Source: Thalia democratica
Taxonomy: Eukaryota
Reading direction: 5' to 3'
NCBI GenBank assembly: GCA_965202585.1
Contig: OZ241832.1
Span: 31,868,001-31,932,000 of the forward strand
Length of the DNA: 64,000 bases
The notes beneath the pieces were generated by a model, which saw only the letters and a list, made by a program, of their open reading frames with translations, was not told where the DNA came from and made no database searches. Positions within the stretch are counted from its first letter, which is position 1. Every line of letters starts with the position of its first letter. A program made the position numbers and the translations under genes. Of this stretch, positions 9,186 to 33,724 are shown one piece after another.

Positions 9186-10043
9186 ATGAAATTGCTTCTC
9201 CTTCTCGCTTCATTGACCGCTATGACGTGCAGTTTGCCGGCTGGCAGAGTTCCCACCGTTGAAGAGTTCAGAAAATTTCTGCAGCAGCACGAAAAAAAAG
9301 CGGGAAACGTCGACAAGCGGGCTTCCCTGCTGCACGGGGAGCCGAACAAAATGGCGTTTAAAAACCGAATGAGGGCCGGAAGCGCGAAACCTCGACTCAA
9401 AAAAGTGCACACATTCGATCTTCGAAATGACCAGAAGCTAATCATTGATCGAAAAAACAGTTATCTGAAGCCGATACCTGATCTTTTTCCTCATCACGGA
9501 TCGGCTCCCAAGATCGACAATTCCTACTTGCACATGATGCCGTGGAAGGACGATGGAAAGACGAAGAAAAAGTTCGGATCATTCCGAGTTCGAACCAAAC
9601 CAGCTGACGGAATGAAAGATCATAAAAGCCGAGATTATCAGCACATCGGGTCCTCACTTTCAACTTACGAAGATCCTCGGGACAGAATGCTGGTGGCACT
9701 GAAACATGTCTACGGCAACGACATTCCCGAGTATTACAGGAGAAAATACAACATACAGGCGGACGGTAGAAAGGAGAATAATGTTTTGGTCGAAGTACCA
9801 AGCGGTTATAAAATTCCAAGTAATTGGCGAAAAGACGCAGTGGCTGATAACATGCCAGCTAAAAAGTTTCCTAATGATAAAGTTTTAAAGGAGAAAAAAC
9901 GCGGTAAACGTAGAAATGATAAAAACAAAAACCAGTTAGGAAAGTCAAACAAGAAGCAAAAGAAAAGATCAAATAGAAAGCAAAACAATAAAACAGACAA
10001 AAATCGTAAGAAGAAGAAATACAAAAAGTCGAATAAAACTTAA
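9186..10043 (+). CDS. Secreted Lys/Arg-rich protein, paralog A, N-terminal ORF (285 aa)
   Basis: Hydrophobic signal peptide MKLLLLLASLTAMTCS; VDKR dibasic site; close paralog at 42096-43754(-); intronless; no family recognised. Confidence 0.85.
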   Translation: MKLLLLLASLTAMTCSLPAGRVPTVEEFRKFLQQHEKKAGNVDKRASLLHGEPNKMAFKNRMRAGSAKPRLKKVHTFDLRNDQKLIIDRKNSYLKPIPDLFPHHGSAPKIDNSYLHMMPWKDDGKTKKKFGSFRVRTKPADGMKDHKSRDYQHIGSSLSTYEDPRDRMLVALKHVYGNDIPEYYRRKYNIQADGRKENNVLVEVPSGYKIPSNWRKDAVADNMPAKKFPNDKVLKEKKRGKRRNDKNKNQLGKSNKKQKKRSNRKQNNKTDKNRKKKKYKKSNKT

Positions 10044-10046
10044 AAT

Positions 10047-13000
10047 ATGAAAGTGAAAACAAAAGACATAAAGATTTCGAACATAGAATCTAAATTTGAA
10101 AAAATGCCGATAAAAGACGCTAGAAATGCTGCTGCCGTTAAAGATTTTTATGCTGCCAAAGAGGCAATGAAGGATTCTGCTGCTGCCAGAAACGCAATGA
10201 AGGATTCTGTTGTTGCTAGAAATGCAATGAAGGATTCTGCTGCTGCCAGAAATGCAATGAAGGATTCTGCTGTTGCCAGAAATGCAATGAAGGATTCTGC
10301 TGTTGCCAGAGACGCAATAAAGGATTCTGTTGTTGCCAGAAATGCAATGAAGGATTCTGCTGCTGCCAGAAATGCAATGAAGGATTCTGCTGTTGCCAGA
10401 AACGCACTGAAGGATTCTGCTGCTGCCAGAAACGCAATGAAGGATTCTGCTGTTGCCAGAAATGCAATGAAGGATTCTGCTGTTGCCAGAAACGCACTGA
10501 AGGATTCTGCTGCTGCCAGAAACGCAATGAAGGATTCTGCTGTCGCCAGAAACGCAATGAAGGATTCTGCTGCTGCCAGAAATGCAATGAAGGATTCTGC
10601 TGTTGCCAGAAATGCAATGAAGGATTCTGCTGTTGCCAGAAATGCAATGAAGGATTCTGCTGTTGCCAGAAACGCAATGAAGGATTCTGCTGCTGCCAGA
10701 AATGCAATGAAGGATTCTGCTGTTGCCAGAAACGCAATGAAGGATTCTGCTGTTGCCAGAAACGCAATGAAGGATTCTGCTGTTGCCAGAAACGCAATGA
10801 AGGATTCTGTTGTTGCCAGAAACGCAATGAAGGATTCTGCTGTTGCCAGAAACGCGATGAAGGATTCTGCTGCTGCCAGAAATGCAATGAAGGATTCTGT
10901 TGTTGCCAGAAACGCAATGAAGGATTCTGCTGTTGCCAGAAACGCGATGAAGGATTCTGCTGCTGCCAGAAATGCAATGAAGGATTCTGCTGTTGCCAGA
11001 AATGCAATGAAGGATTCTGCTGTTGCCAGAAATGCAATGAAGGATTCTGCTGTTGCCAGAAACGCAATGAAGGATTCTGCTGCTGCCAGAAACGCAATGA
11101 AGGACTCTGCTGCTGCTAGAGACGCAATGAAGGATTCTGCTGTTGCCAGAGACGCAATGAAGGATTCTGCTGTTGCCAGAAATGCAATGAAGGATTCTGC
11201 TGCTGCCAGAAATGCAATGAAGGATTCTGCTGTTGCCAGAAACGCAATGAAGGATTCTGCTGTTGCCAGAAACGCACTGAAGGATTCTGCTGCTGCCAGA
11301 AATGCAATGAAGGATTCTGCTGCTGCCAGAAATGCAATGAAGGATTCTGCTGTTGCCAGAAATGCAATGAAGGATTCTGCTGTTGCCAGAAATGCAATGA
11401 AGGATTCTGCTGCTTCCAGAAACGCAATGAAGGATTCTGCTGTTGCCAGAAACGCAATGAAGGATTCTGCTGTTGCCAGAAACGCAATGAAGGATTCTGT
11501 TGTTGCCAGAAACGCAATGAAGGATTCTGCTGTTGCCAGAAACGCAATGAAGGATTCTGTTGTTGCCAGAAACGCAATGAAGGATTCTGCTGTTGCCAGA
11601 AACGCGATGAAGGATTCTGCTGCTGCTAGAGACGCAATGAAGGATTCTGCTGTTGCCAGAAATGCAATGAAGGATTCTGCTGTTGCCAGAAACGCAATGA
11701 AGGATTCTGTTGTTGCCAGAAATGCAATGAAGGATTCTGCTGTTGCCAGAAACGCAATGAAGGATTCTGTTGTTGCCAGAAACGCAATGAAGGATTCTGC
11801 TGTTGCCAGAAACGCAATGAAGGATTCTGTTGTTGCCAGAAACGCAATGAAGGATTCTGCTGTTGCCAGAAACGCAATGAAGGATTCTGTTGTTGCCAGA
11901 AACGCAATGAAGGATTCTGCTGTTGCCAGAAACGCGATGAAGGATTCTGCTGCTGCTAGAGACGCAATGAAGGATTCTGCTGTTGCCAGAGACGCAATGA
12001 AGGATTCTGCTGTTGCCAGAAATGCAATGAAGGATTCTGCTGCTGCCAGAAATGCAATGAAGGATTCTGCTGTTGCCAGAAACGCAATGAAGGATTCTGC
12101 TGTTGCCAGAAACGCACTGAAGGATTCTGCTGCTGCCAGAAATGCAATGAAGGATTCTGCTGCTGCTAGAGACGCAATGAAGGATTCTGCTGTTGCCAGA
12201 GACGCAATGAAGGATTCTGCTGTTGCCAGAAATGCAATGAAGGATTCTGCTGCTGCCAGAAATGCAATGAAGGATTCTGCTGTTGCCAGAAACGCAATGA
12301 AGGATTCTGCTGTTGCCAGAAACGCACTGAAGGATTCTGCTGCTGCCAGAAATGCAATGAAGGATTCTGCTGCTGCCAGAAATGCAATGAAGGATTCTGC
12401 TGTTGCCAGAAATGCAATGAAGGATTCTGCTGTTGCCAGAAATGCAATGAAGGATTCTGCTGCTTCCAGAAACGCAATGAAGGATTCTGCTGTTGCCAGA
12501 AACGCAATGAAGGATTCTGTTGTTGCCAGAAACGCACTGAAGGATTCTGCTGTTGCCAGAAATGCAATGAAGGATTCTGCTGCTGCTAGAGACGCAATGA
12601 AGGATTCTGCTGTTGCCAGAGACGCAATGAAGGATTCTGCTGTTGCCAGAAATGCAATGAAGGATTCTGCTGCTGCCAGAAATGCAATGAAGGATTCTGC
12701 TGTTGCCAGAAACGCAATGAAGGATTCTGCTGTTGCCAGAAACGCACTGAAGGATTCTGCTGCTGCCAGAAATGCAATGAAGGACTCTGCTGCTGCTAGA
12801 GACGCAATGAAGGATTCTGCTGTTGCCAGAGACGCAATGAAGGATTCTGCTGTTGCCAGAAATGCAATGAAGGATTCTGCTGCTGCCAGAAATGCAATGA
12901 AGGATTCTGCTGTTGCCAGAAACGCAATGAAGGATTCTGCTGTTGCCAGAAACGCACTGAAGGATTCTGCTGCTGCCAGAAATGCAATGAAGGATTCTGC

Positions 13001-13727
13001 TGCTGCCAGAAATGCAATGAAGGATTCTGCTGTTGCCAGAAATGCAATGAAGGATTCTGCTGTTGCCAGAAATGCAATGAAGGATTCTGCTGCTTCCAGA
13101 AACGCAATGAAGGATTCTGCTGTTGCCAGAAACGCAATGAAGGATTCTGCTGTTGCCAGAAACGCAATGAAGGATTCTGTTGTTGCCAGAAACGCAATGA
13201 AGGATTCTGCTGTTGCCAGAAACGCAATGAAGGATTCTGTTGTTGCCAGAAACGCAATGAAGGATTCTGCTGTTGCCAGAAACGCGATGAAGGATTCTGC
13301 TGCTGCTAGAGACGCAATGAAGGATTCTGCTGTTGCCAGAAATGCAATGAAGGATTCTGCTGTTGCCAGAAACGCAATGAAGGATTCTGCTGTTGCCAGA
13401 AATGCAATGAAGGATTCTGCTGTTGCCAGAAACGCAATGAAGGATTCTGTTGTTGCCAGAAACGCAATGAAGGATTCTGCTGTCGCCAGAAACGCAATGA
13501 AGGATTCTGCTGCTGCTGCCAGAAATGCAATGAAGGATTCTGCTGTTGCCAGAAACGCGATGAAGGATTCTGCTGCTGCTAGAGACGCAATGAAGGATTC
13601 TGCTGTTGCCAGAAATGCAATGAAGGATTCTGCTGTTGCCAGAAATGCAATGAAGGATTCTGCTTCTGCCAGAAACGCAATGAAGGATTCTGCTGCTGCC
13701 AGAAATGCAATGAAGGATAGAAAATAA
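10047..13727 (+). CDS. Repeat-tail ORF of paralog A (1226 aa, ~118 x AMKDSA[V/A]ARN), in frame with 9186-10043 after one TAA
   Basis: Same frame as the upstream ORF; MKVKTKDIKISNIE is contiguous with the body in paralog B; 3'-flank homology with B starts after 13727. Confidence 0.65.
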   Translation: MKVKTKDIKISNIESKFEKMPIKDARNAAAVKDFYAAKEAMKDSAAARNAMKDSVVARNAMKDSAAARNAMKDSAVARNAMKDSAVARDAIKDSVVARNAMKDSAAARNAMKDSAVARNALKDSAAARNAMKDSAVARNAMKDSAVARNALKDSAAARNAMKDSAVARNAMKDSAAARNAMKDSAVARNAMKDSAVARNAMKDSAVARNAMKDSAAARNAMKDSAVARNAMKDSAVARNAMKDSAVARNAMKDSVVARNAMKDSAVARNAMKDSAAARNAMKDSVVARNAMKDSAVARNAMKDSAAARNAMKDSAVARNAMKDSAVARNAMKDSAVARNAMKDSAAARNAMKDSAAARDAMKDSAVARDAMKDSAVARNAMKDSAAARNAMKDSAVARNAMKDSAVARNALKDSAAARNAMKDSAAARNAMKDSAVARNAMKDSAVARNAMKDSAASRNAMKDSAVARNAMKDSAVARNAMKDSVVARNAMKDSAVARNAMKDSVVARNAMKDSAVARNAMKDSAAARDAMKDSAVARNAMKDSAVARNAMKDSVVARNAMKDSAVARNAMKDSVVARNAMKDSAVARNAMKDSVVARNAMKDSAVARNAMKDSVVARNAMKDSAVARNAMKDSAAARDAMKDSAVARDAMKDSAVARNAMKDSAAARNAMKDSAVARNAMKDSAVARNALKDSAAARNAMKDSAAARDAMKDSAVARDAMKDSAVARNAMKDSAAARNAMKDSAVARNAMKDSAVARNALKDSAAARNAMKDSAAARNAMKDSAVARNAMKDSAVARNAMKDSAASRNAMKDSAVARNAMKDSVVARNALKDSAVARNAMKDSAAARDAMKDSAVARDAMKDSAVARNAMKDSAAARNAMKDSAVARNAMKDSAVARNALKDSAAARNAMKDSAAARDAMKDSAVARDAMKDSAVARNAMKDSAAARNAMKDSAVARNAMKDSAVARNALKDSAAARNAMKDSAAARNAMKDSAVARNAMKDSAVARNAMKDSAASRNAMKDSAVARNAMKDSAVARNAMKDSVVARNAMKDSAVARNAMKDSVVARNAMKDSAVARNAMKDSAAARDAMKDSAVARNAMKDSAVARNAMKDSAVARNAMKDSAVARNAMKDSVVARNAMKDSAVARNAMKDSAAAARNAMKDSAVARNAMKDSAAARDAMKDSAVARNAMKDSAVARNAMKDSASARNAMKDSAAARNAMKDRK
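10164..13718 (+). repeat. Coding minisatellite, 30-bp unit gcaatgaaggattctgctgttgccagaaac, ~118 copies with higher-order structure
   Basis: Strict 30-bp register; the only indel is an in-frame 3-bp gct insertion near 13510. Confidence 0.98.
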
Positions 13728-17016: not shown

Positions 17017-17150
17017 CTACTTGAGCATCTCGTTGAAGCTCCTCCCGATGAGCCACCTCCTCACTTCGCTCGTCCCCGCTCCTATCTCGTACAACTTGGC
17101 GTCTCGCAGGAACCTTCCCGTCGGGTAGTCGTTGATGTACCCGTTTCCTC
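17017..17150 (-). CDS. IVD: IVD exon 10 (last): [44 protein letters not shown]
   Basis: tttttgcag acceptor; IVD-type GAGTSE motif; TAG at 17017-17019. Confidence 0.97.
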
Positions 17151-17573
17151 CTGCAAAAATATAGTTGAAACTAATGTACTGTAAAACAATACTTCCACTT
17201 GTTAATTTTAATTAATTCGTTGATAACAGTGTTGTACACTACATCGTACATGTTGAAAGACACATCAATATATATTTCTCGCGAAAAACAATATTAATTT
17301 TAAGAAAAATTTTTATCAGTTGTTATATCTGCTTTATCATATAGATAAAAAAAAGTACTCATTAGTTTTAATTGTTAGTCGTTTAAATATTCATTTTCTT
17401 CTGCGAAAATGTATTATATAATATTACTTGTAGTAAAAAACTTCAAAACTTGTTATATTTAGTTAATAGTTAATGATAGTATACTCATTTTCTCCTGCGA
17501 AAAAAAGTATTCAACTACATCAGTGTTACTCCGTTTAGTATAATTGCAGTAAAAATAAATAAAATCAGCAAAC

Positions 17574-17751
17574 CTAATAACTGAATGCCATCTAATGCGA
17601 CTTGTGTAGCTGATTCGGCAGCGTACAGTATTATTGCAGCGCAGTCTCTGTTGTTGAACTGTCCCTTATCGCAAGCCCTAGCAACAGTGTACATATAGCT
17701 CCTACATGCGGATAGTTTTGTGAACATGTCCGCCATCTTGCCTTGCAGTAA
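17574..17751 (-). CDS. IVD: IVD exon 9: [60 protein letters not shown]
   Basis: aacag acceptor, G|gtttgc donor, phase 0 to 1; matches the IVD C-terminal helices. Confidence 0.97.
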
Positions 17752-17948
17752 CTGTTTTGTTTGTTTGTTATTTATGATGTTATTTCTTAGTTGTGTTTAT
17801 TTTAATTATCATTTAAAAAAAAAAAACAGCTGATTTTACTTAAAAAAAAGTTTTGCCTTGCAGTAACTGTTATGTATTAATGGTTTATCACATTATATTA
17901 GTTAGATAGTATTGTTATTGAACAAAAAAAAAAAGCGCTAAAATATTT

Positions 17949-18001
17949 GGTCCAAGGACCTGGTGTACGAAAAAACCTTTCGGTTATCGTGTCATACACC
18001 A
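17949..18001 (-). repeat. Dispersed hairpin repeat, copy 2 (best preserved)
   Basis: Reverse complement TGGTGTATGACACGATAACCGAAAGGTTTTTTCGTACACCAGGTCCTTGGACC. Confidence 0.75.
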
Positions 18002-19165
18002 GGAAACATTTTAAAGTCATGTCCAGGACAATAGATGTGTATTTATAAAAAACAAAGTCTTAATTACATTAAAAAAACTAAGAAAAAGGATTAACAAACA
18101 ATCATCTAGCCTTGTAGTTTCTATTATATGTGTTTGTTTTTTTTTTTGATAAATTTGGGGAGATATAATAATTGTATTATACTTAATTTTTATTCAATTA
18201 GTAGAAAAAAATAAAAATATTGTTAGATGGCATATTTTTATTTGTAACATAGCGAACAAACAGTAAGTATGAAAATAATTTAAGTTTTTATTTGTTGTGT
18301 TTAAACAAACAACTGTTTTAACCTTGCAAAAAAAAATAAAAAGATTAAATTTACAAGCTCTAACAAAATAATGTTCCCTATTTGTACTTATAAAGTTCAC
18401 TGTGATAGTATTTTTGTGGTAATTCAAGATTAATTATTTTTATTTCATAAATAACTAACTACCTTTATTTTACCTTCAGTATCTATTCTACACAATTTTT
18501 GCAGAGTATATATTCCTACTCAGTATAGTAATACAATGGCATGAGTAATTAGGTTAAATGAGTTTGTTATGAGATTAGGAATGTAGATGTAAATGTGTTG
18601 TCTAGTTTGAAATAATATAACATAGCTGAAACTTTAAACAAAATTTATGTGTCATACACTTCGTTTAGAATCACGCTCTTTTTAACGAGATTTATTTTGA
18701 AACATCAATGTAGGTAAAACATACAATTAATTGTAAAACTATTCAAATGTTTTAAAGACGTTTGTTTAAATTAAAAAATAAAATTTTAGTAGATTTTATA
18801 AATTAAGTAGTTAAATAAAAAAACTGAAAAGTAAAAAGTGAATTCATAGTTATTTATAAAACTTGTTGGAAGCTTATGTTTTAACCTCATTGATAAGGGT
18901 ACTTAAAAACATACAATAAAATTAAATAACAATAAAACTTGTGCTTACGTAAGACCAAAATTAATAAAAACAAAATATTCCATAAAAAGTATTTTTATTT
19001 ATAAACATAATAACTTTTTTAAAAACCAATTTTAACAGACAGATAATGGTAAATTTTAAAAACCTGAAGTCAGTCAAACTTTAAAAAAAAGTTTTGAATG
19101 TAATATAATTACCTTAGTTATTACTTTTTAAGCCAAATTTTATTTAAGTAGATATAAAAACAAAC

Positions 19166-19247
19166 TTGGAATTCTCCAATTCTTTTACCGAATTGCTTTC
19201 TCTGATGAACATAAGGAAAAGCACAATCCACCACTGCTTGCATTATA
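19166..19247 (-). CDS. IVD: IVD exon 8: IMQAVVDCAFPYVHQRKQFGKRIGEFQ
   Basis: tttttcaag acceptor, CAA|gtttgt donor, phase 2 to 0; R-x-QFG acyl-CoA dehydrogenase motif. Confidence 0.95.
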
Positions 19248-20287
19248 CTTGAAAAATTGAAGTTTTTATTATTAAATTGATGATATACTATTTTTTTTAT
19301 CTAAATAATTTTTTTACCACTGCTTGCATTTTACTTTAAAAAAAGTATTATTTAATGAATCACTTTCAAGTGATAACATTTTAAAGAGTTACTTATATTT
19401 ATTATTCAAAAAACTTAGATTCAATCATTATTATGGAATCATTCTAAAGTTTGTATATTAAATAAAAAGAATTTAAAAAGTTAGTTGTTAAAATGTTTGT
19501 CAAATAAAAACTATTTAAAACGTCGTCTAATTATTTGTTTTGATAAATTGAGTACTTTTTAGATTGTTGTTGATTATCAAATAGCGTAAAATGTTCAATG
19601 AGTTTTAAAATGAAATGTTTAGCATGATACTTTTAATAAACAGTCACAGCTTTAAATTAAAATTTTTACTTTGCAGGTACGCTTAGATAAATAAAAATTA
19701 ATTGTATTTATTTAAAAATTAAATTGTCAATCATTAACTGGTATATTATTCTAAAAAAGAGAATTTTTGTAATTGCAATTGACAAACAAATAAATAAAGC
19801 ATGCAAACAAAATTAAACTAAAAAGTAATCATTTTCTTCAGCAAAAAAAAATATATATGTGAATAATATAAAGACTGAAGTCATTTTAAAACAAACTCTT
19901 ATCAATGAGAGGAAAAAAAACTTTGGAAGGTAAAAAATTGTAAAGCTCAAAGCTCTAAAACTTTCATTTATTTTAAGAACTTTCTGTAATACTTTCAAAT
20001 ACAACCATGTTTATATTTTTTATTTTAAAACAAACTATCTGTTAAACATTTTTACAGAAATGTTACCAACTCAACATATTATAATTTATTATATTAAAAA
20101 TAATTGTGTTTTAATACTACACATACCCGACATATTAAACTGTACTGTATTAGTATTAATTTGTATAGTAATACTACACATACCCGACATATTATATCTC
20201 ATTATATTGTGTTTTAACTTGTTAATACCTACCCGACATATTCGAACTTATTATATTAATGATATTTTAAATACAAATGCCACCAAC

Positions 20288-20381
20288 CCGACGGGGCCTG
20301 CAGATAAAAGAAGCCTCTCAAGGTCCAGACCACTCATCAAAACGTATACTCCGTCATTGTATGGACCCAAGATGTTCGATT
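20288..20381 (-). CDS. IVD: IVD exon 7c (canonical-type alternative): (E)[31 protein letters not shown]
   Basis: 94 bp, caatatag acceptor, GG|gttggt donor, phase 1 to 2, no stops. Confidence 0.92.
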
Positions 20382-21211
20382 CTATATTGATAATTACAAA
20401 TGTAAAATTATAAAAATTAACTGTTAAATAAATCAGTCTGGTTGTTCACATGTATATACAAACACCAAATAATTTACAAACTTTCATTAAAACAATTTTG
20501 CATTACAGTGGGTTACTTTTATAAAGTTCATCTAATTTAAGGTTAAAATTAATTTTAGGAAAATCTCAATTATATTAAGGAACTAATTGAGATTATATTT
20601 TTGGCCTGATTCAGTAATTGTATTGTATGCATCTATTTTATTTATTTATTTACCTAATAGACTTGTTAGGATTTTGACTACTTAAGAAACTTTGTCAAGT
20701 TTTTTATCACAATGGTTGATCCCAGTATCTTGCTATTGGTAATCAACTGATTTATGTTTCCAGTAATATACATATATTTGTAGCAACTATGTTTACAGCT
20801 TAAAAATTTTCCCATAGAATCAGGAGGTGAAAAATAAAAATAACTGTTGTTTTGAAAATCAATGACTTTAATGGTTTGATTTTCTGATACTACTTAAACT
20901 TGATATCTAAACTTTACCTGTACCTAACATTAAGCAACCTTAGAAAAATTTAAATTAAATATAAAAAAGGAAGTAGAAATTAGCCTAACAGTTTGCATAA
21001 TTTTGAGCATATTTGATAATTACTTATATTATTGCAAGTCATACCTTAAGAATTAAGTCGAGTGCGAAATCTAAAAGTTTCAAATTAAAATTAATATGCC
21101 ATTATTTAAAACGAGCAAACTTAAACTGAACTAGTATGCATGCAATGCATGCGGCAATGAACAACAAATGATGTTTCACCAAAGTTATTTTAATCTATGT
21201 TAAATGTTTAC

Positions 21212-21305
21212 CCGACTGGACCTGCTGCTCCGGCCAATCTTTCCAAATCGAGTCCGGTCATCAAAACGTAAACCCCGTTGCCGAGGCCTCCGAGCACATT
21301 TGAGG
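21212..21305 (-). CDS. IVD: IVD exon 7b (alternative): (A)SNVLGGLGNGVYVLMTGLDLERLAGAAGPVG
   Basis: 94 bp, tcttatag acceptor, GG|gtaaac donor, phase 1 to 2, no stops. Confidence 0.9.
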
Positions 21306-22034
21306 CTATAAGATTGAAATACACTTTAACACATTAATGGTCAGGTCATAACTAGAGTTGCCATTGGCAAGTTTTTTATTAAAAGATGAAAAGAGACACT
21401 AGGCATTCATATAAAACTTTTTGGCCTGTATTGGTAATTGTACGTATACATCATCTTTTGTATTTATTTACCCATTAGACTTGTTAGATTTTGACAACTT
21501 TAGAAACTTTGTCAAGCTTTTTATCATAAAGGTTATTCCCAGTACCTTGCTATTGGTGATCAGTTGGCTTATGATTTTAGTGATACACATACATTTAGTA
21601 AAGACTGTACAACTATGGTTATAGCCTAAAAAATTTCGTAGAACCAGGAGATGAAAAACATCAAGGTTATTTTATTTTATCAAAAAACAATGACTTTAGT
21701 AGTTTGCTTTTCGATACTATCTACACTTGACGTCTAAAACTTTATCTGTATCTAATATTAAGCAACCTAAAGAAACTTAGAAAATTTAAAAACTGACATA
21801 TAAAAAAGGAAGTAGAAATTATCCTAACAGTTCGTATAATTTTGCGAATATATGAAAACTATTAATATCATTGCAAGTAAAACCTTAAAAATTAACTTGA
21901 TTGCGAAAGCTATAAGTATCAAACGAAAATTAATGCGCCAATTATTTAAAAACTTAAACTAAATTAATATGGATGCATTGCACAACAAATTATATTCCAC
22001 CAAGCTAATTGCAAATATATATTTTAATTTTTAC

Positions 22035-22128
22035 CCTACTGGACCAGCTGCCCCGCCCAATCTTTCCAAATCGAGACCGGTCATCAGAACATAAACCCCG
22101 TTGCCAACACCTCCGAGCACATTTGAGG
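22035..22128 (-). CDS. IVD: IVD exon 7a (alternative): (A)SNVLGGVGNGVYVLMTGLDLERLGGAAGPVG
   Basis: 94 bp, gttttttag acceptor, GG|gtaaaa donor, phase 1 to 2, no stops. Confidence 0.9.
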
Positions 22129-22245
22129 CTAAAAAACAACTAACTTTAATACATGAATGGTCAGGTCATAATCAGAGTTGCCAGTTTAGCGAAAACAATA
22201 GTTGAAAATGGATTTCAACAATGGAAACAAATGTGCTTGAAAACG

Positions 22246-22276
22246 CCGTTGCCAAGGCCTCCAAGCACATTTGAGG
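22246..22276 (-). pseudogene. IVD: Truncated fourth copy of IVD exon 7 (5' ~31 nt only)
   Basis: ttttatag|CC TCA AAT GTG CTT GGA GGC CTT GGC AAC GG, then homology stops and an in-frame TGA follows. Confidence 0.85.
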
Positions 22277-22979
22277 CTATAAAAAAACACACTTTTTTCA
22301 CGTTTGACTGTTCATGTTTAGAAGTATTGACATATTTACGGCTTTAACCATAAGGGGTATATTGCTTCAACTCATTATTATTTTCTTTTGGTCAAGTTAA
22401 GCGGAAAACAATAGTTGAAAATGAAGAATTTTCAACCAACTTTGGTCAAGATATGGTTTAGCGCAATGAAAAGTACCAAAATCTATATTTATTTTAGTAG
22501 AAGTGAGTGTGAGTTTGTATGTTGGTCAAAAAGTTGTTGTTTTTATTTACGGTTGCAAGAACTTTTGTGCTCCACTTGTTTTGGCAGGAAATATCACTTG
22601 AAAATATTACTTTGACCAATAAAGTGCTAGTACTTGTATATGTTTATCATAGACTGTGAAACTAAATTGTATATAAGGTTTATTGCTTTAATGGAAGTGA
22701 TATATTGTTTTTTCAAAGAAAAGCTGCTTTCAAAGTCTCAATTCAAATTCAAACTGAGTAGTTATAGATTGGTACTTTTAAAAAATTCGTTATCAAAAAT
22801 TAAAACTTTTTTGTATGTTATTGATTAGAACGTTGTTTATTAAAATATTCAAACACTGTTTTTCAATAACAACAAATTTTGTCAATTTATAATTTACAAA
22901 CAAGTGAATTAAGACCTTCAACCACTAATACAAAGGTAACAATAAATTTTTTTTTGGTATATTACTTTATTTAACAAAC

Positions 22980-23111
22980 CAGGAACTTTGCAATCTTCGA
23001 ACACCAGTTCACAGGTATTGCTTCCCCTCATCCCGAGCTTATCGAGTTTCTGATGAGTGCTGAACCCGTCCATTCCCTTCTCCACTATGAACGCTGTGAT
23101 TCCGTGCGGTC
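22980..23111 (-). CDS. IVD: IVD exon 6: [44 protein letters not shown]
   Basis: ttctaag acceptor, G|gtttgt donor, phase 1 to 1; KLG-RGS-T motif. Confidence 0.97.
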
Positions 23112-23559
23112 CTTAGAAAGATGAGATTTGTTACTAACTATCAATGTTAATAATGTTATTTTTATACAAAACAAAGTTCATGCTTATTTGAATCAACTGT
23201 AGATATGGGTGGTCAGAATAAAAAGTTTAACTATTTCAACAAGTAAAATATACTTTCTTTTTTTAAGTTAGTCATATAGAATATATTTTTTACATGATGA
23301 AATGAGTCGTAAGTACTTCTGGCTAACTGACAAACCACAGCGCTGAACTAATCTAGTACATGAAAACAATTGTACCATTTCATTCAACTTTACTTTCGTG
23401 CTGCATTACATTGATAAGCAATTAATAAATCAAAAATTAAAAACTAATTTATTGAAAAAATTTTAATATCTTTATCTGCATCAGTTTTGGCGTCATTATC
23501 TTGATAGTTAATTAATTTATAAAAAATCTAATAAAAAAGATGTAATTATAAAAATGTAC

Positions 23560-23655
23560 CTTTATCCGCATCAGTTTTGGCATACACCACTAATACATCA
23601 GCGTCAGGTCCGTTGGTGATCCAGAACTTGTTGCCGTTAAGAACGTATGAATCAC
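23560..23655 (-). CDS. IVD: IVD exon 5: [32 protein letters not shown]
   Basis: ttttttag acceptor, G|gtacat donor; NG-K-WITNG motif. Confidence 0.97.
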
Positions 23656-23749
23656 CTAAAAAAACAAAAAAAAAATTAAATACATACTATTCAGTACTAA
23701 ACAACAATCACAGCTTGTTTTAATTTGTTTATTCTTAATACTTATATAA

Positions 23750-24100
23750 ATGTTTTTGGCAAACTTTCTCCAGGTTTTTTAAAATACACATTTTTGGGTA
23801 TAATCTTAGTTTTAAGTTAAGTTTGAGGTAAAAAACATTGAAAAGATACTGTAAAGCTACTTAAAATGTGTTTTTAAATAGAAAAATTTTTGATTATGAC
23901 AATTTTTTTTTATCTATATGGTAGATTTTTTGTGTCGAATCAAAATTTTTCTACTTACCATGTGAGCATTGTTTAAAATTCCAGGCTTTCCAGGCTTTTT
24001 TTTTTCAAAATTTCTTAAGTTCCAGGTTTTTTCGCCTAAATTGTCAAACTCCATTTATTTTCTAAGCTATTCTAGGTTTCCAAGTATTTTGATATTCCTG
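23750..24100. mobile_element. Partial copy of the 'CCAGGTTTT' MITE family
   Basis: Interior matches 29450-29853 (atactgtaaa..cttaaaatgtg; atggtagattttttgtgtc); termini unclear. Confidence 0.5.
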
Positions 24101-24342
24101 TTATATATGCATAGCAATTTAAAATTCATTGCATTGTTCTTATAATTCATTATACAATGATTCACATTGAAATAATTTACGTTCTATCAATTACATACTA
24201 TTCAGTACTCATCAACACGAATGATTTACCTAAATATAAACAAACGTTCAGTACTCATGAATAAACATGGCAGAAGTTGTTTGAATTTTTTTTTGTCATT
24301 TAAAAATACATGACAATTACCTTATTTATTTATTTATTATTA

Positions 24343-25075
24343 CAGTAGACTACCGCTTAAGTACGCACTTTTTTTGGTACGCATCACGCCTTAAGTACGC
24401 ACTTATCAAGAAAGGTAGAATGTCCAACCTGCTGAGTTAGCCTAAGACTTTCACAAATTTTAAACTAGGGTGAGTAATCCTTAGTAGTCTAAGTGGCATG
24501 AAATTGCGACAGTCCTATTATTAAATGTTAATAAACTAAATACTTATGTAGTGGTTGCAGAAAAGTGAAAAGAATAATGATATTTGAGCTGTAATGCTAA
24601 CAAATAAATAAATCTACATGACAAAACTAAAAACCTACAAATACAACATAGCTAAGTCATAACTTAATTTAGATGTACACACATTGATGTTTTCAAAATG
24701 TTTGGTAAACATAATTTAGTTTGGTACTTTACCTATAACAAAACAAAATATGGCTTAATATTCTTTTCTATACCATTGACTGACATTGACTTTCTATTTT
24801 AATGGTATGTATTAATTATGTAGAAACGTTTTATAGACTTAATAAATCATTTTAAAATCTAATAAAAAGTTTTACAGATTAGAATTATGTATTAAATGTT
24901 ATTTAAAATAAAAAGACTTATTTATTTGGTTTAATTATTTAATGGCTAGTTGTAAGAAAGAAAACAAACAACTTGAGTTCATATAATACTATGTCTTCAA
25001 AAAGTACGCACTACCCATGCTAAGTACGCACTTTTTGGTCGGGTTCAATTTGCGTACTTAAGCGGTAGTGTACTG
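24343..25075. mobile_element. Non-autonomous Tc1/mariner-pogo-type element
   Basis: 25-bp TIRs cagtagactaccgcttaagtacgca / tgcgtacttaagcggtagtgtactg (24/25), TA on both sides, repeated aagtacgcac motifs. Confidence 0.9.
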
Positions 25076-25290
25076 TATTATTATTATTATGTATATACAG
25101 ATAACAGTAAACTTGTCATTCGCATCAAGTTGGCTAACTATTTATATTATACAACTTACATTGTATCTTGTATCATTTCATTATTCTTTTTATTCATCAT
25201 ACAAATATGTTATCCCTTGTTATTTATATAATTTATTTATTCTTACTATATACATTATTATACATACAAGGTATGCATAATATACTAATA

Positions 25291-26047
25291 CGGGGTGGCC
25301 ACTAATTTTTGGCAAACTGTCTCCAGGTTTTTAAATTTTCCTCCAGGTTTTTGAAAGTACATACTTTTTTTGATAGCTTTTTGTATCAAATTAATCTGAA
25401 GTTAAAAAAGGTGTTTTTTGATATAATTAAACTACTTAAACGATACGTTTTTACTATTACTTAATATTTATTTTATTATAGAACTGGTTATTATATAACT
25501 TATATTAGAACTAATTAAAGCCCTTAAAAATAGTTAAACCAACTAAATGATACTTATTACAGCTACTTTAAATAAACTAGCCACACCTAATGACTTATAC
25601 TATAAAGTTAAGATTTTTTACAGCTGCTATAAATACTTTATGCATAAAACATTGCATAAAACATTTTTATTTAAATCTGCTCTTAAATTTTTCTTGCTCT
25701 TAGTTTTCTCTTAACTAAACTTTATCAAGTTGAACTAGTCAGAAATAGGTTCTTTTTGACTGACTTTACATGACACTGGAAACAATAGAAATGCAAGTTA
25801 AAAACAAGCTTTATTAACTAAAGTATAAACTTGACTAAAATTTATCATTTACTAATTGAAAACTTGTAGTAGAACTTTTTTTAATTCAAAAAAGGACAAA
25901 GTTCACAATATTTATTTAACGAAGTTGTTTAAAAACTTTAATTTATTTAAATTCTAGGTTTTTTCACGAGTTTGTACAAAATTCAAGGTTTTTCCAGGTT
26001 TTTTTTTTCGAAATTTTTAAAGTTCCAGGTTTTTTTTTGCCACCCTG
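25291..26047. mobile_element. MITE, 'CCAGGTTTT' family
   Basis: Ends cggggtggc / gccaccctg flanked by TA; ccaggtttt subterminal repeats. Confidence 0.7.
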
Positions 26048-26256
26048 TAAATTTGAAAATACCATGTATTCTAAATCAAAACAGCTACAACTTTGTAAAA
26101 AACTAGCATTGGTTTATCATTAGTTTTTTAACTAGCCAATATAAGTGTGAACTGTTAAGAATACATAAAGTAAAACATTTAAAAAACATTAATATGGACT
26201 TGATAAACTTAATGTCTAAACTATGTGAAAAGAATATTGTTCCTCACTATCTAAAT

Positions 26257-26549
26257 CAGCAATTCTTAAACTGGGGTAAATTTACCCCTAACGGTAAATT
26301 CCCTTCTTTTAGGGGGTAAATTTTCTTTTATACATGTTATGTAAATTAATGTTTATTTATTGTATTTGTAGTTTATTAGTCAGTTTTTAATTGCAATTTT
26401 TTAAAGTTAAATAAACTTTTTAATTTTTATATCTAATAAGCTTATATACAATCTAGTTTTTCCCTCAAAATTAAAAATTATTCTGTAGGTTGGGGGTAAG
26501 TTTGGTAAAATCTCTCAAAATGAGGTAAGGATGAAAAAAAGAACCACTG
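26257..26549. mobile_element. hAT (Buster/Charlie-like) MITE
   Basis: Ends cagcaattct / agaaccactg; 8-bp TSD atctaaat / atctagat (7/8). Confidence 0.75.
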
Positions 26550-29449
26550 ATCTAGATGATGTGCACATAACTTAATCGTACGATAAAATAAAATCTGATA
26601 TAATTGCATTGTCTTGTGTTTAATTAATGTCATAAACTGTATTTTTACACAGCTTCAAATTACTTATAACGATGCAGAATCTGCTAATTAAGCAATTAGT
26701 TATTACAGAAATTATAAATAAATATTTATTTCGAAAAAAAATCAACGATTTACGATCAACTACGTCACAAGTTGCTTCAAGTGTAAATTTTTATAACATT
26801 TTAAAAAACTTAGTTTAAAATCTAACTCTCGAAAGATATCAACTAAGGTGCTTAAAAACTGGGTCAATGAAAAATTCTGCTAAAGTATGTCGGCCTGGAC
26901 TTGCTTGTGCCGCGAGGTCTCTGTCTACCGAAAGCTTGTTGGTCTGGTGATCAAACCTTTACTTAAATTTGAGCTTATAAACTAGGGATATAAAAACTGC
27001 GGCCCGAGATGTACTTAAGAACAAAAAATGATTTCTAACATATATAATTTAAATGTTTGGTTTAACCTTAGAGTTGGGCTCTTAGTTTATTAATTATTAA
27101 AGCTTTAATATTGCATATGTTATCAAACTTTTGGTTTTAAACAATATGACAGCGGCTCATAGATTTATTTTCTAAAACTATGCTGCCCGCGAGCAACTTT
27201 TTATATAAAAAACTGACTTTATAAAAATTTTATAAAAATTGAATCTTAGCCTACAAAGGCTGTCAACCTATTGTTTTATAAGTATAACCTTTGAAATAAA
27301 ACATGAAGCATTCAACTTTCGTTTTCTTTTTTCAGTTGGAAAATAAAAGCATTTGTTATTTTCTGGGAATATTTTTAACACCTGTGCACATTCTAAGATT
27401 TGATTTAGGAATCAATAAATTTGAATATGTTTTTTTTTTAAATGCTCTGGGCTTGCTTTTACAACTTACTTTTGAGGTTTCAAAAAAATTCTAAAACTTA
27501 TGCTTTACTACAGGCAGCAAATTGAAATAAATATCAATTAATATATCTTTAAAATTTATAAGTCAAAACAGTAAAAAGCTTTGTAGTATTAAACTAAATG
27601 ATTCATTAAAACTTAAATTTGCCTGTTACAAAAAAATCCAAAAAGCTTGAAGTTTCTAAAAAACTAGGATTTATCAACAATTTTCTACTTAGCCTGAATG
27701 AGGAATAAAATTTTTAGAATCTACTAAAAGTTACACATTATTTTCATACGTTTTAAATTTCGAAGTAAAACTTGACCAAATAAAAAAATATTTTTACTCG
27801 TGAAAACAATTTTTATTAATGAAACTATTTAACCAATAATTCAACCAATCTTGGTCATTTGTAAATGCTTTATTGTTGGCAGAACATATTATTAAGATGG
27901 TCATAAATGTCAGATGCATGGTTAAAACATTAACACTGAAGTCAATTCAAATTTAAGAGACATATATCTAAATAAAAATATAAAGTCGTTTTTACTTGTG
28001 AAAAGGAATCATATTGATTAATTTTATTTTAACACTTTCATATTGCTAATTTTGATTACATGCACATACCCTCAATTTGAGTGAGTATTTGTTTAATAAA
28101 TATGTAGTTATAAATACTGTGTTTCCACAGCTTTAAATTTAAATTTTTATACCCGCTAACGTCATATAAGAATTCTTGCTAATTGCTAATTTAATATTTA
28201 TGTTTAAAAATTAAAATCGATGATTTTTCATTACCTACGTCACAAAATTCCTCAAATGTATTATTTTTTATAAACATCTTAAGAAATGTTGAATATCAAT
28301 TTTGAAGAAATAATGACTAAGAGTTGCTTAAAATATTCTCGAACAACATTTAATTTACACTGTTAGTATATTATTAGACTTTTTTTTAATCTAAAATAGA
28401 CTAAATTACCAGTGCTATCTTTGAATAACATAAAAATAGAACAATTACTTAGTAAATGCTGTAATAGAGCACATTTTTCCAAATAAAACAAAAAATAAAT
28501 TTCTTCAAAATTAATATAAGTGAATCTAAATATCCATTCAGGTGTAAATTTATGCTTTCAGCTTATTTTGTACTATAGCTCAATTTTTAAAGCATAAACT
28601 ACCATACCACATAAATCATTTTTGATTTAATATAATCAACAGTTCGAAAGGTTAGGAACTTTTACAACAGTGAGTAATAAAAAATATTTTATTTGAACTA
28701 TATACATTATTTAAAACGTTTTAAAACATGTTTATAAGTTTTACATACAATTTAACTTTAATAAAAAGGCAAGTAAATCTGAATAATTTCAAAGTTATAC
28801 TAAAACTTAATCAAATTCACCAAGTATTTAAAACGCTTTGCGACAAGTATCTTATGAACTAAAATTAACAAGCTGCCATAAAGTTTGATCATACCGCTTT
28901 GATCATCAGACCACAGCGTTCCGGAGTTTGTTTCAAGTTTTTGGATGTTTCGGAGTTTATGTAAGTTTCAAAATAAGAGTTAACGTTATTTTATGGCTAT
29001 AATATCATTACCACACATCTTACTTTGAAATTTTTAAAACGAGAGCTAATCATGTATAGTAGATTATATTTGTAAAGCAATTCAGTTTTTATAAGATAAA
29101 ACTGGCCTGAATTTGAGGAGTCGAAATAACGAAATTTTAGTAAAACAATTAGCGTGTATTTTTAAAAAGTTTTTAATAGATAGGGTACGAAGCAATCATA
29201 ATACAACATAATATAATAAATATATATAATATTTTGATTTTAAGGAAACTTTTAGATTCTCGAAAGTTGATGTTTAAAGCTAAGCAATCATTTTTTTGTG
29301 CAAAAGCAACTTAAACTATTTGTCAAGGACTTTCGCAACAAACATTTTTTTTTGTTCGAGGGACAATATTTATTTGGCGGAAAAAATTGTCAGGCTCTAT
29401 ATTTTCAGCCAAATGTATGAACTACTTGATGTGCGTAGAGAAACATAAA

Positions 29450-29853
29450 GAGGGTTGCTAAAGATTTAAAAAAAAAAATTTCCAGGTCTTCTGAATTTCT
29501 TCCAGGTTTAAAAAAACAAGTTTATGGTCTATTCTTATTATAAATTAAATTTGAGGTAAAAAAAATGGATTTAGATAGTATAAAAACGTTGAAAACATAC
29601 TGTAAAAGTGCTTAAAATGTGCTTTATAATAGAAAAATATTTAGTGATACAAAAAATTTTTGGTGATGACAAAGAATTTTTATCTACATGGTAGATTTTT
29701 TGTGTCAAATTCTAACTTACTTATGATGTAAAAATGGCCTACAGTTCCAGGTTTTTCCGTATTTTTTAGTGATTTTTGTTGAAAATTCCAGTTTTTTTTT
29801 TAATTTCTCAATTTCCAGTTTTTTTTAGAATTCCAGGTTTTTTGGCAACCCTA
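29450..29853. mobile_element. MITE, 'CCAGGTTTT' family
   Basis: Ends gagggttgc / ggcaacccta; ccaggttt repeats. Confidence 0.65.
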
Positions 29854-29929
29854 TTAACATGAAAATAATAACCAATGAACTATTCTTATTTTTATGTTTA
29901 TTTATTTACTTTATATAAACACAAATAAC

Positions 29930-30023
29930 CTTGCTTGTCGGCTTTCAGTTTCATTGAAACGACATCCGACCCCGATCCTGGTTCCGACATTGCTAGCGCC
30001 CCCATGTGCTCACCACTGATCAA
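29930..30023 (-). CDS. IVD: IVD exon 4: [31 protein letters not shown](G)
   Basis: tttacag acceptor, G|gttatt donor; ALAMSEP-SGSD FAD-binding motif. Confidence 0.97.
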
Positions 30024-30340
30024 CTGTAAATAGTTTTAATTGTTATATATTTCTCACTGCTGATCAGCTGTAAACTGTTTTAATTATTATATATTTCTCA
30101 CTGCTGATCAGCTGTAAACTGTTTTAATTATTATATATTTCTCACTGCTGATCAGCTGTAAACTGTTTTAATTATTATATATTTCTCACTGCTGATCACT
30201 GTAAACAGTTTTAATTATTATATATTTCTCATTGCTGATCACTGTAAACAGTTTTAATTATTACATATTCCTCATTGCTGATCACTGTAAACAATTTTAA
30301 TTATTACATATTTTCGCCTCTGATCAGCTGTAAACATTTT
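30009..30340. repeat. 43-44-bp minisatellite (8 copies) built from the exon 4 splice acceptor
   Basis: Unit ctcactgctgatcagctgtaaactgttttaattattatatattt; the first copy is the real exon/intron junction. Confidence 0.93.
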
Positions 30341-30520
30341 TGTTTTTTGGGTAATTTCATAAAAGTTTTAATTAAGCTGAGGTGTCTGTGCTAGATAAAA
30401 ATCAATTAAAGCTGAGCTCAGAGTAGCATTTAATAAAGAATGCCTGTTTGAAACAAGAAACTTTTTTACAACTATCTAAGTATCAAAAACATAGCAACAT
30501 AATCAAAACAATCAACCTAC

Positions 30521-30690
30521 TTTGGGCAGGTACTTTTCCTTCTGTTCCGGCGTGGCGTGCCTGACCAGCTGATTGACGCACAAGTTGCTGTGAGCTCCGT
30601 ACGATAATGCGATTGATGCCGACACACGGGACATTTCCTCCATGACAATGCAGTGCTCGAATATTCCCATACCGGTACCTCCGTCAGATT
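30521..30690 (-). CDS. IVD: IVD exon 3: [57 protein letters not shown]
   Basis: catacag acceptor, AAA|gtaggt donor; [11 protein letters not shown] is IVD-diagnostic. Confidence 0.97.
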
Positions 30691-30971
30691 CTGTATGAAT
30701 GAAAATATGTTATACTAAATGTATGTTTTACTTAATATTACTACTTTTATCACTTGTTTTTATAAAACCTATTTTCGAATTTTCCCACACCAGTACCTCC
30801 GTCATATTTATTTTTCATTAGTTAATTATATTATTTATTTTTTGAATGCCTCCATCTCTCTGTCTGATTTTGTTTAAATTAAAAATAATTTGTTAATATA
30901 AAAAACCTCAGTCTTAACAATTAATTAAAAAAACTAAATTATTTGAGTAAGAGTTAAAAATTGGTGCTGAG

Positions 30972-32729
30972 TAGTGATGTACCGGACCCACAATTTCGGG
31001 TCCGGCCGGACCCGGATCCGGACTTTTTTTTCAAATTAGAATCCGGCCGGACCCGGATCCGGACTTTTTTTTCAAACTAGAATCCGGCCGGAACCGGATC
31101 CGGACTTTTTTTCAAATTAGAGTCCGGCCGGAACCGGATCCGGACTTTTTTTTCAAATTAGAATCCGGCCGGATCCGGATATCAGACAAAAATGGCAATA
31201 TCCGGCCGAACCCGGACCCGGATAGTGAGTGCGGTGCATTACTAGAATAAACTAGCCTGAGTCAGAATGAGGTTTTTAGAAACTGAAAAAAAAAGAACTT
31301 TAATCTAATAATAAGTAGAACAGCTAGCCCCAAAGTTTACAAATTTAGGTGTTATTTACAATTAAAAATCTGAAATCAAGTTCTTGAACAAAATACACTA
31401 GAAAATTACAAAATATTCAAAACTGGATCAGCTCAAACTTATTCAAAATCTAAAAGAAAACTAGCCTGAGTTTTTATATAAAACTAAACTAGCCTGAGGC
31501 AGTCCAAGATTTTCTAAAATTCCCAAAATTTTTTAAACTAGTAGGGTTGCCACTGTTTAAGTCAATAAAACTAGCTAGAGTGGGTATAAACAAGCCTGAG
31601 TAAGAATGAGGTTTTTAAAAACTGAAAAAATTACTTTAATCTAATAATCAGTAGAACAGCTAGCAAAGGTTGACAATTTGGTAGCAAAGTTGTGGACTGA
31701 TTGTGGTACACTTAACTTATTATACTACCCATCATAGTTAAATCCTACCTTATCTAATTAATATCTAACAAACACTAAATTCTAACTGAGACTACTTTCT
31801 ATAATCAGACACGACAGTTTTGAGTGATGAATCTTTTATATAAAACACAACAAGAAATACTAGCATAAAGAAAATTATTAATTACTTTGGTAACACTTTA
31901 AAAACTGGAAGCTATTTAAATCTATATCAAAAGACTTAAAACAAAAATTAAAAATTAAATAAAACTATTCGTAAACAAGAAACTGTAAAATCTTTAATAA
32001 ACTATTAAACTATAAACCTGGATTAAATATTTAAACAATTAAACACCTGTTGAAATATTCTTTTTTAAAACAAAACACTACTTACAATAAGCATTCAAAA
32101 AAACGTTCAAGATATTTTCTTGCTTCAAGCTACACGCCAAACTAACTATCTGCTTACATATAAACTGCCTGTCATGTTCTGATGTTTTGTTGCATCAGTA
32201 TTTAGTTTGAAACATTTCGTCATATGATTCTCATTGGCTCGTACATTCAACCGTATTAACTCTAAATATTCTCTGAGCTCAACTTATACTTAACTTAACT
32301 AACAATAAATAATGCAAGTATTCCAAAGTTTTCAGTTTTATAACATATGTAAAGAGTTGCATTTCATGAAATGTTTAATTCATAATTTAAATGTAAACAA
32401 ATGTAAATTAGTCACGTTTAGAAAATGAGCCAATCACGGTAGGTGTTTAATTTTAACTGACGAAAATAACTCTTATTAATTTACACAGGGTTTGTTTTTG
32501 AAAAATACTTTTTAGTATGCTCTTTTTTACTAACTAGATCCGGGTCCGGCCGGATCTCTGTTAGGATCCGGCCGGACCCGGATCCGGACTTTTTTTTCAA
32601 ATTAGAATCCGGCCGGAACCGGATCCGGACTTTTTTTTCAAATTAGAATCCGGCCGGATCCGGATATCAGACAAAAATGGCAATATCCGGCCGGACCCGG
32701 ACCCGGATAGTGAGTCCGGTACATCACTA
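30972..32729. mobile_element. Composite non-autonomous hAT element with CCGG-rich arrays, in IVD intron 2
   Basis: Perfect 16-bp TIRs tagtgatgtaccggac / gtccggtacatcacta; perfect 8-bp TSD gtgctgag; internal degenerate right end at 31227-31242. Confidence 0.92.
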
Positions 32730-33461
32730 GTGCTGAGTTCAATCTGAGTCTACGCAATAATTGTTTATAAGCAAGTGTGGTAAAAATATTCAAACTTTAG
32801 AACACAGTCTTTAGGAATACTAGGTTTTTATAAAAAGATCGCTTTTAAAGTCAGCTACCTCTAAATTATTCTATCAACTAAGTGTCTACATTATGAGTTT
32901 AAATGTCTTGCTCTTGTAAAGCTTTTAAAATTTAGTTCAAAGCAACCTTTTCATAAAAACCTAGTATAATATATCACTTTCTAAATTTAATATTAAAAAT
33001 TTTAAAAAAAAGTTTTGATTTTTTATTATTTTATGCTGTACACTGCGAGATGCTATTTTTTACAGTAAAAATAAAGTAGTTTCACTCGTTGAGTTAAGTT
33101 GATAAATAATATTTATTTTATATTTATGCATCAATAGAGAGAAAGGGTAACTTTTAGTTGAGCATAAAAAAGAACAAAAAAATGAAAACGAAACAATAGA
33201 TCTTTATCTGATTTAAAAACGTACCATGATTGTAAAAAATATTAAGTTAAATGTATAAAAACTAACAGCTTTAAAAAAAAAATTCAAACAAGTCCAAGAA
33301 AAAAAAAAGAGTCTGAGCTGGTATGAATTAAGCTGAGTGGTTAACAATTTTGTACTAATTATCATTTCCGAACAAAATGTTTAAAACAATTAAAAATAAA
33401 TTTATTTAAATTAAAAAGGTAATTTTTACTATAGATAAACTTGACTTCATATTGATCTAAC

Positions 33462-33724
33462 CAGTGGTCATGAACCTTTTTAAAATCTGAGTACAGTAAA
33501 TTACTACAAAATTATTTCTCTGCACACTAAACTATAAAAATAAAATTTCTTAAATAAAAAAAAAATATTCTTTATGTGTGTTTAGTGTTTCAATATATAA
33601 ATAACATGAACTATTAAATTATGTTATGACTAACTTTTTATAATCAAAAATTACCAAAAAAGCACTACCTAAAAAAATATCTTCACCCTTAATAAATTTT
33701 TGGTGCAAACTGCGAAGACCACTG
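33462..33724. mobile_element. Degenerate hAT-like MITE
   Basis: Ends cagtggtc / gaccactg; TSD not conserved. Confidence 0.4.

Follow-up and report, generated by a model that had tools for sequence, protein, structure and literature searches.

The window analyzed here, a 64,000-nucleotide stretch of the Thalia democratica genome (GenBank assembly GCA_965202585.1, contig OZ241832.1, forward-strand positions 31,868,001 to 31,932,000), carries on its minus strand a gene for isovaleryl-CoA dehydrogenase (IVD; CoA, coenzyme A), in which exon 7 is present as a cluster of three intact copies between single-copy exons 6 and 8. Exons 2-6 and 8-10 of this gene were located (17020-34188) and exon 1 was not located by tblastn or frame translation. 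The positions of exons 2-5, 9, and 10 come from tblastn with IVD homologs and frame translation, and those of exons 6 and 8 from RNA joints and a loose contig end. The features of the gene, in window coordinates and in the order of transcription, are:

~34054-34188, minus strand: IVD exon 2
~30518-30691, minus strand: IVD exon 3
~29928-30032, minus strand: IVD exon 4
~23558-23656, minus strand: IVD exon 5
22980-23114, minus strand: IVD exon 6, constitutive, upstream of the cluster; last base 22980 set by an RNA joint, 5' end by a loose end at 23114
22241-22295, minus strand: truncated fourth copy of exon 7, 7a/7b-like; acceptor region and first ~36 nucleotides of the exon (22241-22276), after which the homology stops
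~21450-22270, minus strand: tandem duplication unit of ~820 bp carrying 7a with flanking intron, marked by direct repeat families
22035-22128, minus strand: exon 7a, GG-type (Thr249, Gly257, Gly258), 94 nucleotides, AG/GT; groups with the GG exons of the relatives L003 and L004
~20630-21450, minus strand: tandem duplication unit of ~820 bp carrying 7b with flanking intron, marked by direct repeat families
21212-21305, minus strand: exon 7b, GG-type (Thr249, Ala257, Gly258), 94 nucleotides, AG/GT
20288-20381, minus strand: exon 7c, canonical type (Ser249, Leu257, Leu258), 94 nucleotides, AG/GT; the copy found in mRNA
19166-19247, minus strand: IVD exon 8, constitutive, downstream of the cluster; RNA joints 20288>19247 and 19166>17751
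~17575-17751, minus strand: IVD exon 9
~17020-17151, minus strand: IVD exon 10, with the stop codon

Over exons 6-9, identity to named animal IVDs is 72-78%, with about equal similarity to those of fish, insects, and corals. The exon peptides match acyl-CoA dehydrogenase models, among which the NCBIfam matches are only generic at the exon level; for exon 7c, every top match in the PDB is an IVD (human IVD is represented there by 1IVH, 8SGR, and 9JQ3-5), and exon 10 reads YEIGAGTSE, containing the IVD-type IGAGT motif (Gly374/Ala375) at the place where MCAD has Tyr-Glu. In the human enzyme, Gly374/Ala375 make room for the branched chain (PMC12369846). Across the whole genome (802 Mb) this is the one IVD locus, and the only exon 7 copies are these three.

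When re-read on the minus strand, the three 94-nucleotide copies are intact at the positions given in the original prediction, each is flanked by AG/GT, and in each the sole open frame is the one that continues exon 6. Joining exon 6 to any single copy and then to exons 8-10 leaves the frame open to the natural stop, and skipping exon 7 or joining any two or three copies produces a premature stop; the joined-exon translations thus agree with the earlier argument that only one-of-three transcripts are productive, with none, two, or three copies shifting the frame. At the nucleotide level 7a and 7b share 84 of 94 positions, 7a and 7c 49 of 94, and 7b and 7c 54 of 94, with the differences between the three falling at exon residues 3, 6-9, 16, and 24-26. 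The peptide of 7a starts SNVLGGVGNG and ends MTGLDLERLGGAAGPV, and that of 7b starts SNVLGGLGNG and ends MTGLDLERLAGAAGPV. The two ~820-bp units are delineated by the direct repeat families D1-D3, D8, D9, D11, and D14-D17 (spacing 817-839 nucleotides, 71-90% identity), and the intron sequence inside them is 79-90% identical. The truncated fourth copy, which was missing from the original count, lies 148 nucleotides upstream of 7a, belongs to repeat family D4 (85% identity to the 5' end of 7a), translates to ASNVLGGLGNGV followed by unrelated residues, and has an RNA depth of ~0-2.

In an alignment with mature human IVD (1IVH), exon 7c corresponds to residues 234-263 (266-295 of the precursor), placing the catalytic base Glu254 (precursor E286) at exon residue 21 and Leu258 (precursor L290) at exon residue 25; the cassette therefore does cover the catalytic helix, as had been proposed. 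All three copies retain the GLDLERL motif, whose Glu is aligned to Glu254. Cryo-EM of the human enzyme has shown that the CoA adenine is hydrogen-bonded by M280 and D284, that R287 clamps CoA, that E286 is the catalytic base, and that L127 and L290 form a barrier that limits acyl chain length (PMC12369846). All of these residues but L127 fall in exon 7, and the CoA-binding and catalytic Met, Asp, Glu, and Arg are kept in every copy. The copies part at the pocket floor: Leu258 is present in 7c, and 7a and 7b have Gly at this position (precursor L290), preceded at position 257 by Gly in 7a and Ala in 7b. In the 127 other IVDs fetched, ranging from bacteria to vertebrates, position 258 is Leu without exception and V, I, T, or M stands at 257, so that, in contrast to 7a and 7b, none of them has Gly or Ala at 257 or Gly at 258. 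Judged by these residues, the 7a and 7b isoforms would be IVD paralogue-like variants rather than canonical IVD, and a GG isoform is predicted to remain catalytically competent while having a deeper pocket and accepting a shifted range of substrates.

Exons of both types were recovered from two further organisms. A small open reading frame (ORF) around 7b led to a 36-residue match in the protein collection (P0151, ending in MTGLDLERLGGAAGPIG) on a 112-kb contig of another assembly (L003), and a search with exon 9 reached a third assembly (L004, a contig of 574 kb) as well as two more distant organisms (L005 and L006); the matches of the exon 9 search among protein representatives are mostly short genomic ORF fragments. 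The exon 7 copies of the first two are:

L003, 10014-10107: GG-type exon, 94 nucleotides, AG/GT
L003, 10446-10539: canonical VL-type exon, 94 nucleotides, AG/GT
L004, 7151-7244: GG-type exon, 94 nucleotides, AG/GT
L004, 9026-9119: canonical VL-type exon, 94 nucleotides, AG/GT

In L003 and L004 exons 3-10 are collinear with those of the window, the GG-type exon lies upstream of the canonical one in the same order as in the window, and the ORFs of the relatives carry the PF02771, PF02770, and PF00441 domains; a comparison with related species, which had been suggested as a check on the cassette, thus recovers the two-type arrangement in both. Across the three organisms the GG type is diagnosed by Thr249 and Gly/Ala257-Gly258-Ala259-Ala260, and the canonical type by Ser249 and (Leu/Val)257-Leu258. 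L005 and L006 have one canonical copy each; in L005 (8937-9293) the equivalents of exons 7 and 8 form one uninterrupted stretch, so that the intron downstream of exon 7 is not universal. A tree of codon positions 1+2 unites the four GG exons (UFboot 77, aLRT 94); a protein-level tree of the 30 exon 7 residues was uninformative. From the shared states and the exon order, the simplest history would be a single old duplication followed by a recent second duplication of the GG exon in the lineage of the window.

The GG exon bears the marks of selection on its protein sequence. When L003 and L004 are compared by blastn, the exons alone align and the introns are unalignable. Between these two organisms the GG exon differs by 18 nucleotides and 2 amino acids, with a dS (synonymous divergence) of 1.13 and a ratio of non-synonymous to synonymous divergence (dN/dS) of 0.034; the corresponding dN/dS values are 0.077 for the canonical exon and 0.013 for exon 6. 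Conservation of the GG exon to this degree was matched in 0 of 50,000 neutral simulations (P<2e-5). In the comparison of the window with L003, synonymous sites have reached saturation (proportion of synonymous differences, pS, 0.74-0.89), yet 25 of 30 GG residues are identical, including those at positions 10-29. Within the window, 7a and 7b differ by 8 synonymous and 2 non-synonymous changes (dN/dS 0.074; neutral P=0.0016), and when the relatives are used to polarize these, a single derived replacement falls to each copy (Leu240Val in 7a, Gly257Ala in 7b). GC content is 50-57% in the GG exons as against ~22-28% in the introns. Purifying selection on the GG exon is similar in strength to that on constitutive exons. 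These results are hard to square with untranslated relics, and a constraint acting on the protein sequence is likewise hard to square with a purely regulatory poison exon.

RNA runs were found by searching with exon 9, and comprise one from the same organism (X7) and four marine metatranscriptomes (X3-X6); the RNA evidence consists of assembled contigs from a few bulk samples, in which rare isoforms are dropped. X7, a contig set of 47 Mb, is transcriptome-like, with an exon depth of 440-1300 and an intron depth of 0-24. Its joints lead from exon 6 to 7c (22980>20381, depth 956.6), from 7c to exon 8 (20288>19247, depth 577.2), and from exon 8 to exon 9 (19166>17751, depth 858.7). The joint between exon 6 and 7c recurs in X3 and X4, X3 furnishes a single 308-nucleotide spliced contig running through exon 6, 7c, exon 8, and exon 9, and loose ends adjoining exon 8 in X4, X6, and X7 carry sequence of the 7c type. 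The default exon is 7c, which accounts for roughly 99% or more of the bulk RNA.

As to how the copies are kept apart, steric exclusion was rightly set aside in the original prediction: the introns between the copies are 729 and 830 nucleotides long in the window, in agreement with the ~730-830 bp first estimated, and those between the GG and canonical exons are 338 nucleotides in L003 and ~1.8 kb in L004. The donors are all of the GT type, with no U12 consensus, and blastn between the introns of the relatives detected no conserved block. Of the two mechanisms proposed earlier, viz., nonsense-mediated decay (NMD) or RNA pairing, the first is in keeping with the frame disruption that follows from skipping or multiple inclusion, and for the second no convincing or conserved pairing was found. 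Frame disruption, presumably followed by NMD, is the only exclusion mechanism with support in the sequence. Exon 7a combines the most pyrimidine-rich acceptor of the copies with a GTAAAA donor and is nonetheless skipped in bulk RNA, and 7c has a weaker-looking GTTGGT donor, yet is used, which suggests that the GG exons are actively repressed in most cells.

We propose that the window harbors a conserved exon cluster of the mutually exclusive type in a single IVD gene, with 7c as the default and the GG variants as rare or conditional alternatives that probably alter the substrate range; we assign this reading a probability of about 0.62. Exon 7 encodes helix G, with the CoA-adenine contacts Met248 and Asp252, the catalytic base Glu254, Arg255, and Leu258, the last forming half of the barrier that closes off the acyl pocket at its bottom. 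Under this reading, an old duplication would have given rise to the canonical type and a derived GG type (Thr249, Gly/Ala257, Gly258, Ala259, Ala260), both of which have been retained, without a change of order, in no fewer than three deeply diverged organisms, and in the genome of the window the GG exon would have been duplicated again into 7a and 7b, leaving a truncated piece behind. As the exon is 94 nucleotides long, only transcripts with exactly one copy are translatable; all others run into premature stops, and NMD would presumably remove them. The GG exons would be used rarely or only in particular cells, stages, or conditions, and the GG isoform would keep its catalytic machinery intact while its opened pocket floor would shift the acyl-CoA range, probably toward longer or bulkier substrates. 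The exon anatomy, frames, conservation, and selection speak for the three-way cassette originally predicted; its three-way use is inferred, 7c alone being seen in the available RNA. Taken together, these features make it very probable that the cluster has a function, one default exon dominating heavily and the others coming into use rarely or conditionally, and we consider it likely that the GG exons are translated somewhere. A bolder proposal, which we advance tentatively and rate as possible rather than probable, is that one IVD gene makes two, and here three, enzymes of differing acyl-chain specificity by swapping the catalytic-helix exon, with GG isoforms serving longer or bulkier acyl-CoAs according to tissue, stage, or diet; this might be an old, clade-wide metabolic adaptation of a group of marine animals, and in the species of the window 7a (Gly257) and 7b (Ala257) may be sub-specializing.

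Several observations weigh against the reading of a conserved cluster with GG variants in use. The depth of 7a is 0 in 5 of 5 RNA runs (X3-X7), and that of 7b is 0 in X3-X6 and reaches 7.1 and 4.6 in two bins of X7 (where 7c has 440-950), values that are explicable by low-depth unspliced contigs at 21340-21678. No joints to 7a or 7b are among those listed for X3-X7. The junctions between exon 6, the exon 7 copies, and exon 8, which had been expected to fall on all three copies, join only 7c among the joints listed for the assembled contigs of X7 and the marine metatranscriptomes; one copy alone being spliced in, as in these RNA contigs, is what the original prediction had named as speaking against itself. 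A profile search of the protein collection, for which peptides of the GG type and of the window exons were set into an insect scaffold (A3), returned no GG-type product among 120 of 7048 IVDs. A pattern scan of JGI metagenome contigs gave 0 matches for GG-type exons and 0 for a spliced junction of a GG exon with exon 8. The search for conserved docking or selector pairing was negative, inverted repeats giving only AT-rich matches of low complementarity, and with the good-looking splice sites of 7a unused, active repression must be assumed. The tree uniting the GG exons rests on 30 codons and has moderate support, and the shift in specificity is argued from one human structure paper.

Among the alternatives, the one that fares best is that the cluster works two ways, with one of 7a and 7b in use and the other a young, intact, decaying duplicate. 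The relatives, each with a single GG exon, accord with it, as does the Ala257 of 7b where 7a and both relatives have Gly; further, with only 10 differences between the copies, 5 changes hitting a neutral copy would look like this with a P of about 0.14. However, both copies have kept AG/GT and an intact reading frame, and the changes are spread evenly, with one derived amino-acid change and about four synonymous ones in each. We regard a two-way cluster as unlikely, albeit less so than the remaining alternatives. A second possibility is that 7c alone is functional, 7a and 7b being duplicated pseudo-exons that are not used and are still intact by chance. All the RNA evidence is indeed of 7c, the truncated fourth copy demonstrates that the region does make dead duplicates, and the 89% identity of the 7a and 7b exons is little above that of the flanking intron (79-90%). 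This does not readily account for a GG exon whose length, phase, and splice sites are kept in three organisms despite saturated synonymous sites and unalignable introns, with a dN/dS of 0.034, for the excess of synonymous over non-synonymous differences between 7a and 7b noted above, or for a GC content of 55-57% maintained in an AT-rich genome. The selection tests strongly disfavor it, and we consider it improbable. More improbable still is a role of the GG exons as regulatory poison exons, which by co-inclusion with 7c would shift the frame and lower IVD via NMD with no contribution to the protein. Double inclusion does lead to premature stops, and no productive GG isoform was seen in the RNA contigs or the protein collection matches; yet such a role has no need of a conserved protein sequence, and here it is the amino-acid sequence that is constrained, synonymous change being saturated, and the catalytic and CoA-binding residues are exactly retained. 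Finally, that the copies stem from an artefact of assembly or of haplotypes, which a highly heterozygous sample with a second haplotype ~8-10% diverged in introns and structurally different in the repeat might have suggested, is effectively refuted, in line with the original assessment, by same-organism DNA contigs identical to the window that span 7b (20966-21481) and 7a (21467-22234) at single-copy depth (~35-50), by the other haplotype lying in separate contigs, and by the same two-type arrangement in two other organisms.

Turning to the neighborhood, the DNA runs X1, X2, and X8 over 17560-23130 show the sample of organism A to be heterozygous, with a second haplotype that shows indels and the ~8-10% intron divergence mentioned above, and in which the repeat unit is arranged differently (joints 21730>20909 and 21320>22183). 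A run labeled organism B has the second haplotype only, at full depth, for which shared polymorphism, hybrid origin, or a labeling or species-boundary issue are possible reasons. The intron between IVD exons 8 and 9 contains an ultra-high-copy repeat at 17940-18001, with a summed DNA-run contig depth of ~640,000-930,000 as against ~100-400 elsewhere, hundreds of loose ends into A/T-rich flanks, and a depth of ~457 in the RNA-like run. In IVD introns 2-3, repeat copies at 30957-31261 and 32484-32796 translate to Ser/Gly/Arg/Pro-rich strings (KKKSGSGSGRILI, RIRVRPDP) and probably represent a dispersed element. The IVD gene is flanked by two paralogous genes in inverted orientation, at 9186-13727 (plus strand) and 42096-43754 (minus strand), which encode secreted-looking Lys-rich proteins with near-identical N-termini and a signal-peptide-like MKL(L/I)L(L/I)LASL. 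The first of these continues past one stop (10044-10046) into a 1226-residue ORF with more than 100 tandem 10-residue repeats (ARNAMKDSA[AV]), and this ORF explains the GC-rich block at 10-14 kb. Elsewhere in the genome, an intron-less acyl-CoA dehydrogenase gene (G000:C6:45505394-45505834), with a 439-residue open frame and a full-length PF00441 in one piece, differs from the other ~10 loci of the family, which consist of separate exons; retroposition, horizontal acquisition, or contamination could account for it. The genome has ~11 acyl-CoA dehydrogenase loci in all, close to the human count of 11, and this gives no hint of a paralogue loss for which the GG isoform might compensate.

In textbooks IVD has a single function, in leucine catabolism, and its specificity is ascribed to a few residues, including Leu258. 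The gene described here offers an exon, evidently kept by selection, in which the catalytic base and CoA contacts are retained and the Leu258 barrier is deleted, and the swap would amount to a natural experiment on chain-length specificity in acyl-CoA dehydrogenases. It also holds a caution for genome annotation, in that its alternative exons cannot be seen in the bulk RNA assemblies and came to light only through comparative selection tests.

The cluster belongs to a known kind, the mutually exclusive exons that arise by tandem exon duplication, and its occurrence in IVD is apparently undescribed: full-text literature searches, judged in part by title or abstract, yielded no report of a mutually exclusive or tandem-duplicated exon cassette in IVD or other acyl-CoA dehydrogenases, in agreement with the original prediction. 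Like the clusters of the type described by Kondrashov and Koonin, such as those of Drosophila Dscam1, mrp, 14-3-3zeta, and Mhc and of vertebrate PKM (exons 9 and 10), it consists of adjacent homologous exons of equal length and phase. It further shares with mutually exclusive clusters in general a length that is not a multiple of 3, such that single inclusion alone is productive, and the presence of more than two variants, a state typical of invertebrates (PMC8373072). It differs from them in that no competing RNA docking or selector structure was detected and in that usage in the available RNA is extremely skewed to one variant. In ACSL6, homologous alternative exons for the fatty-acid gate domain are likewise reported to swap a substrate-gating segment of an acyl-CoA enzyme, albeit one with an unrelated fold (PMC1543647). 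The closest analogue is the pair of exons 3a and 3b of ACOX1, a member of the same acyl-CoA dehydrogenase/oxidase superfamily, which are also tandem-duplicated homologous exons used one per transcript, and whose isoforms differ in substrate specificity (PMC3791418); according to PMC8373072, this exon duplication arose several times among animals. RNA, protein, and a disease mutation attest to both isoforms of ACOX1, whereas in the IVD cluster only 7c is seen in RNA, and the two cases differ in gene, in the part of the fold concerned, and in compartment, the swap in IVD including the helix of the catalytic base. Should the reading favored here hold, the IVD cluster would be the second case in this superfamily, after ACOX1 3a/3b, in which splicing widens the substrate range of an enzyme.

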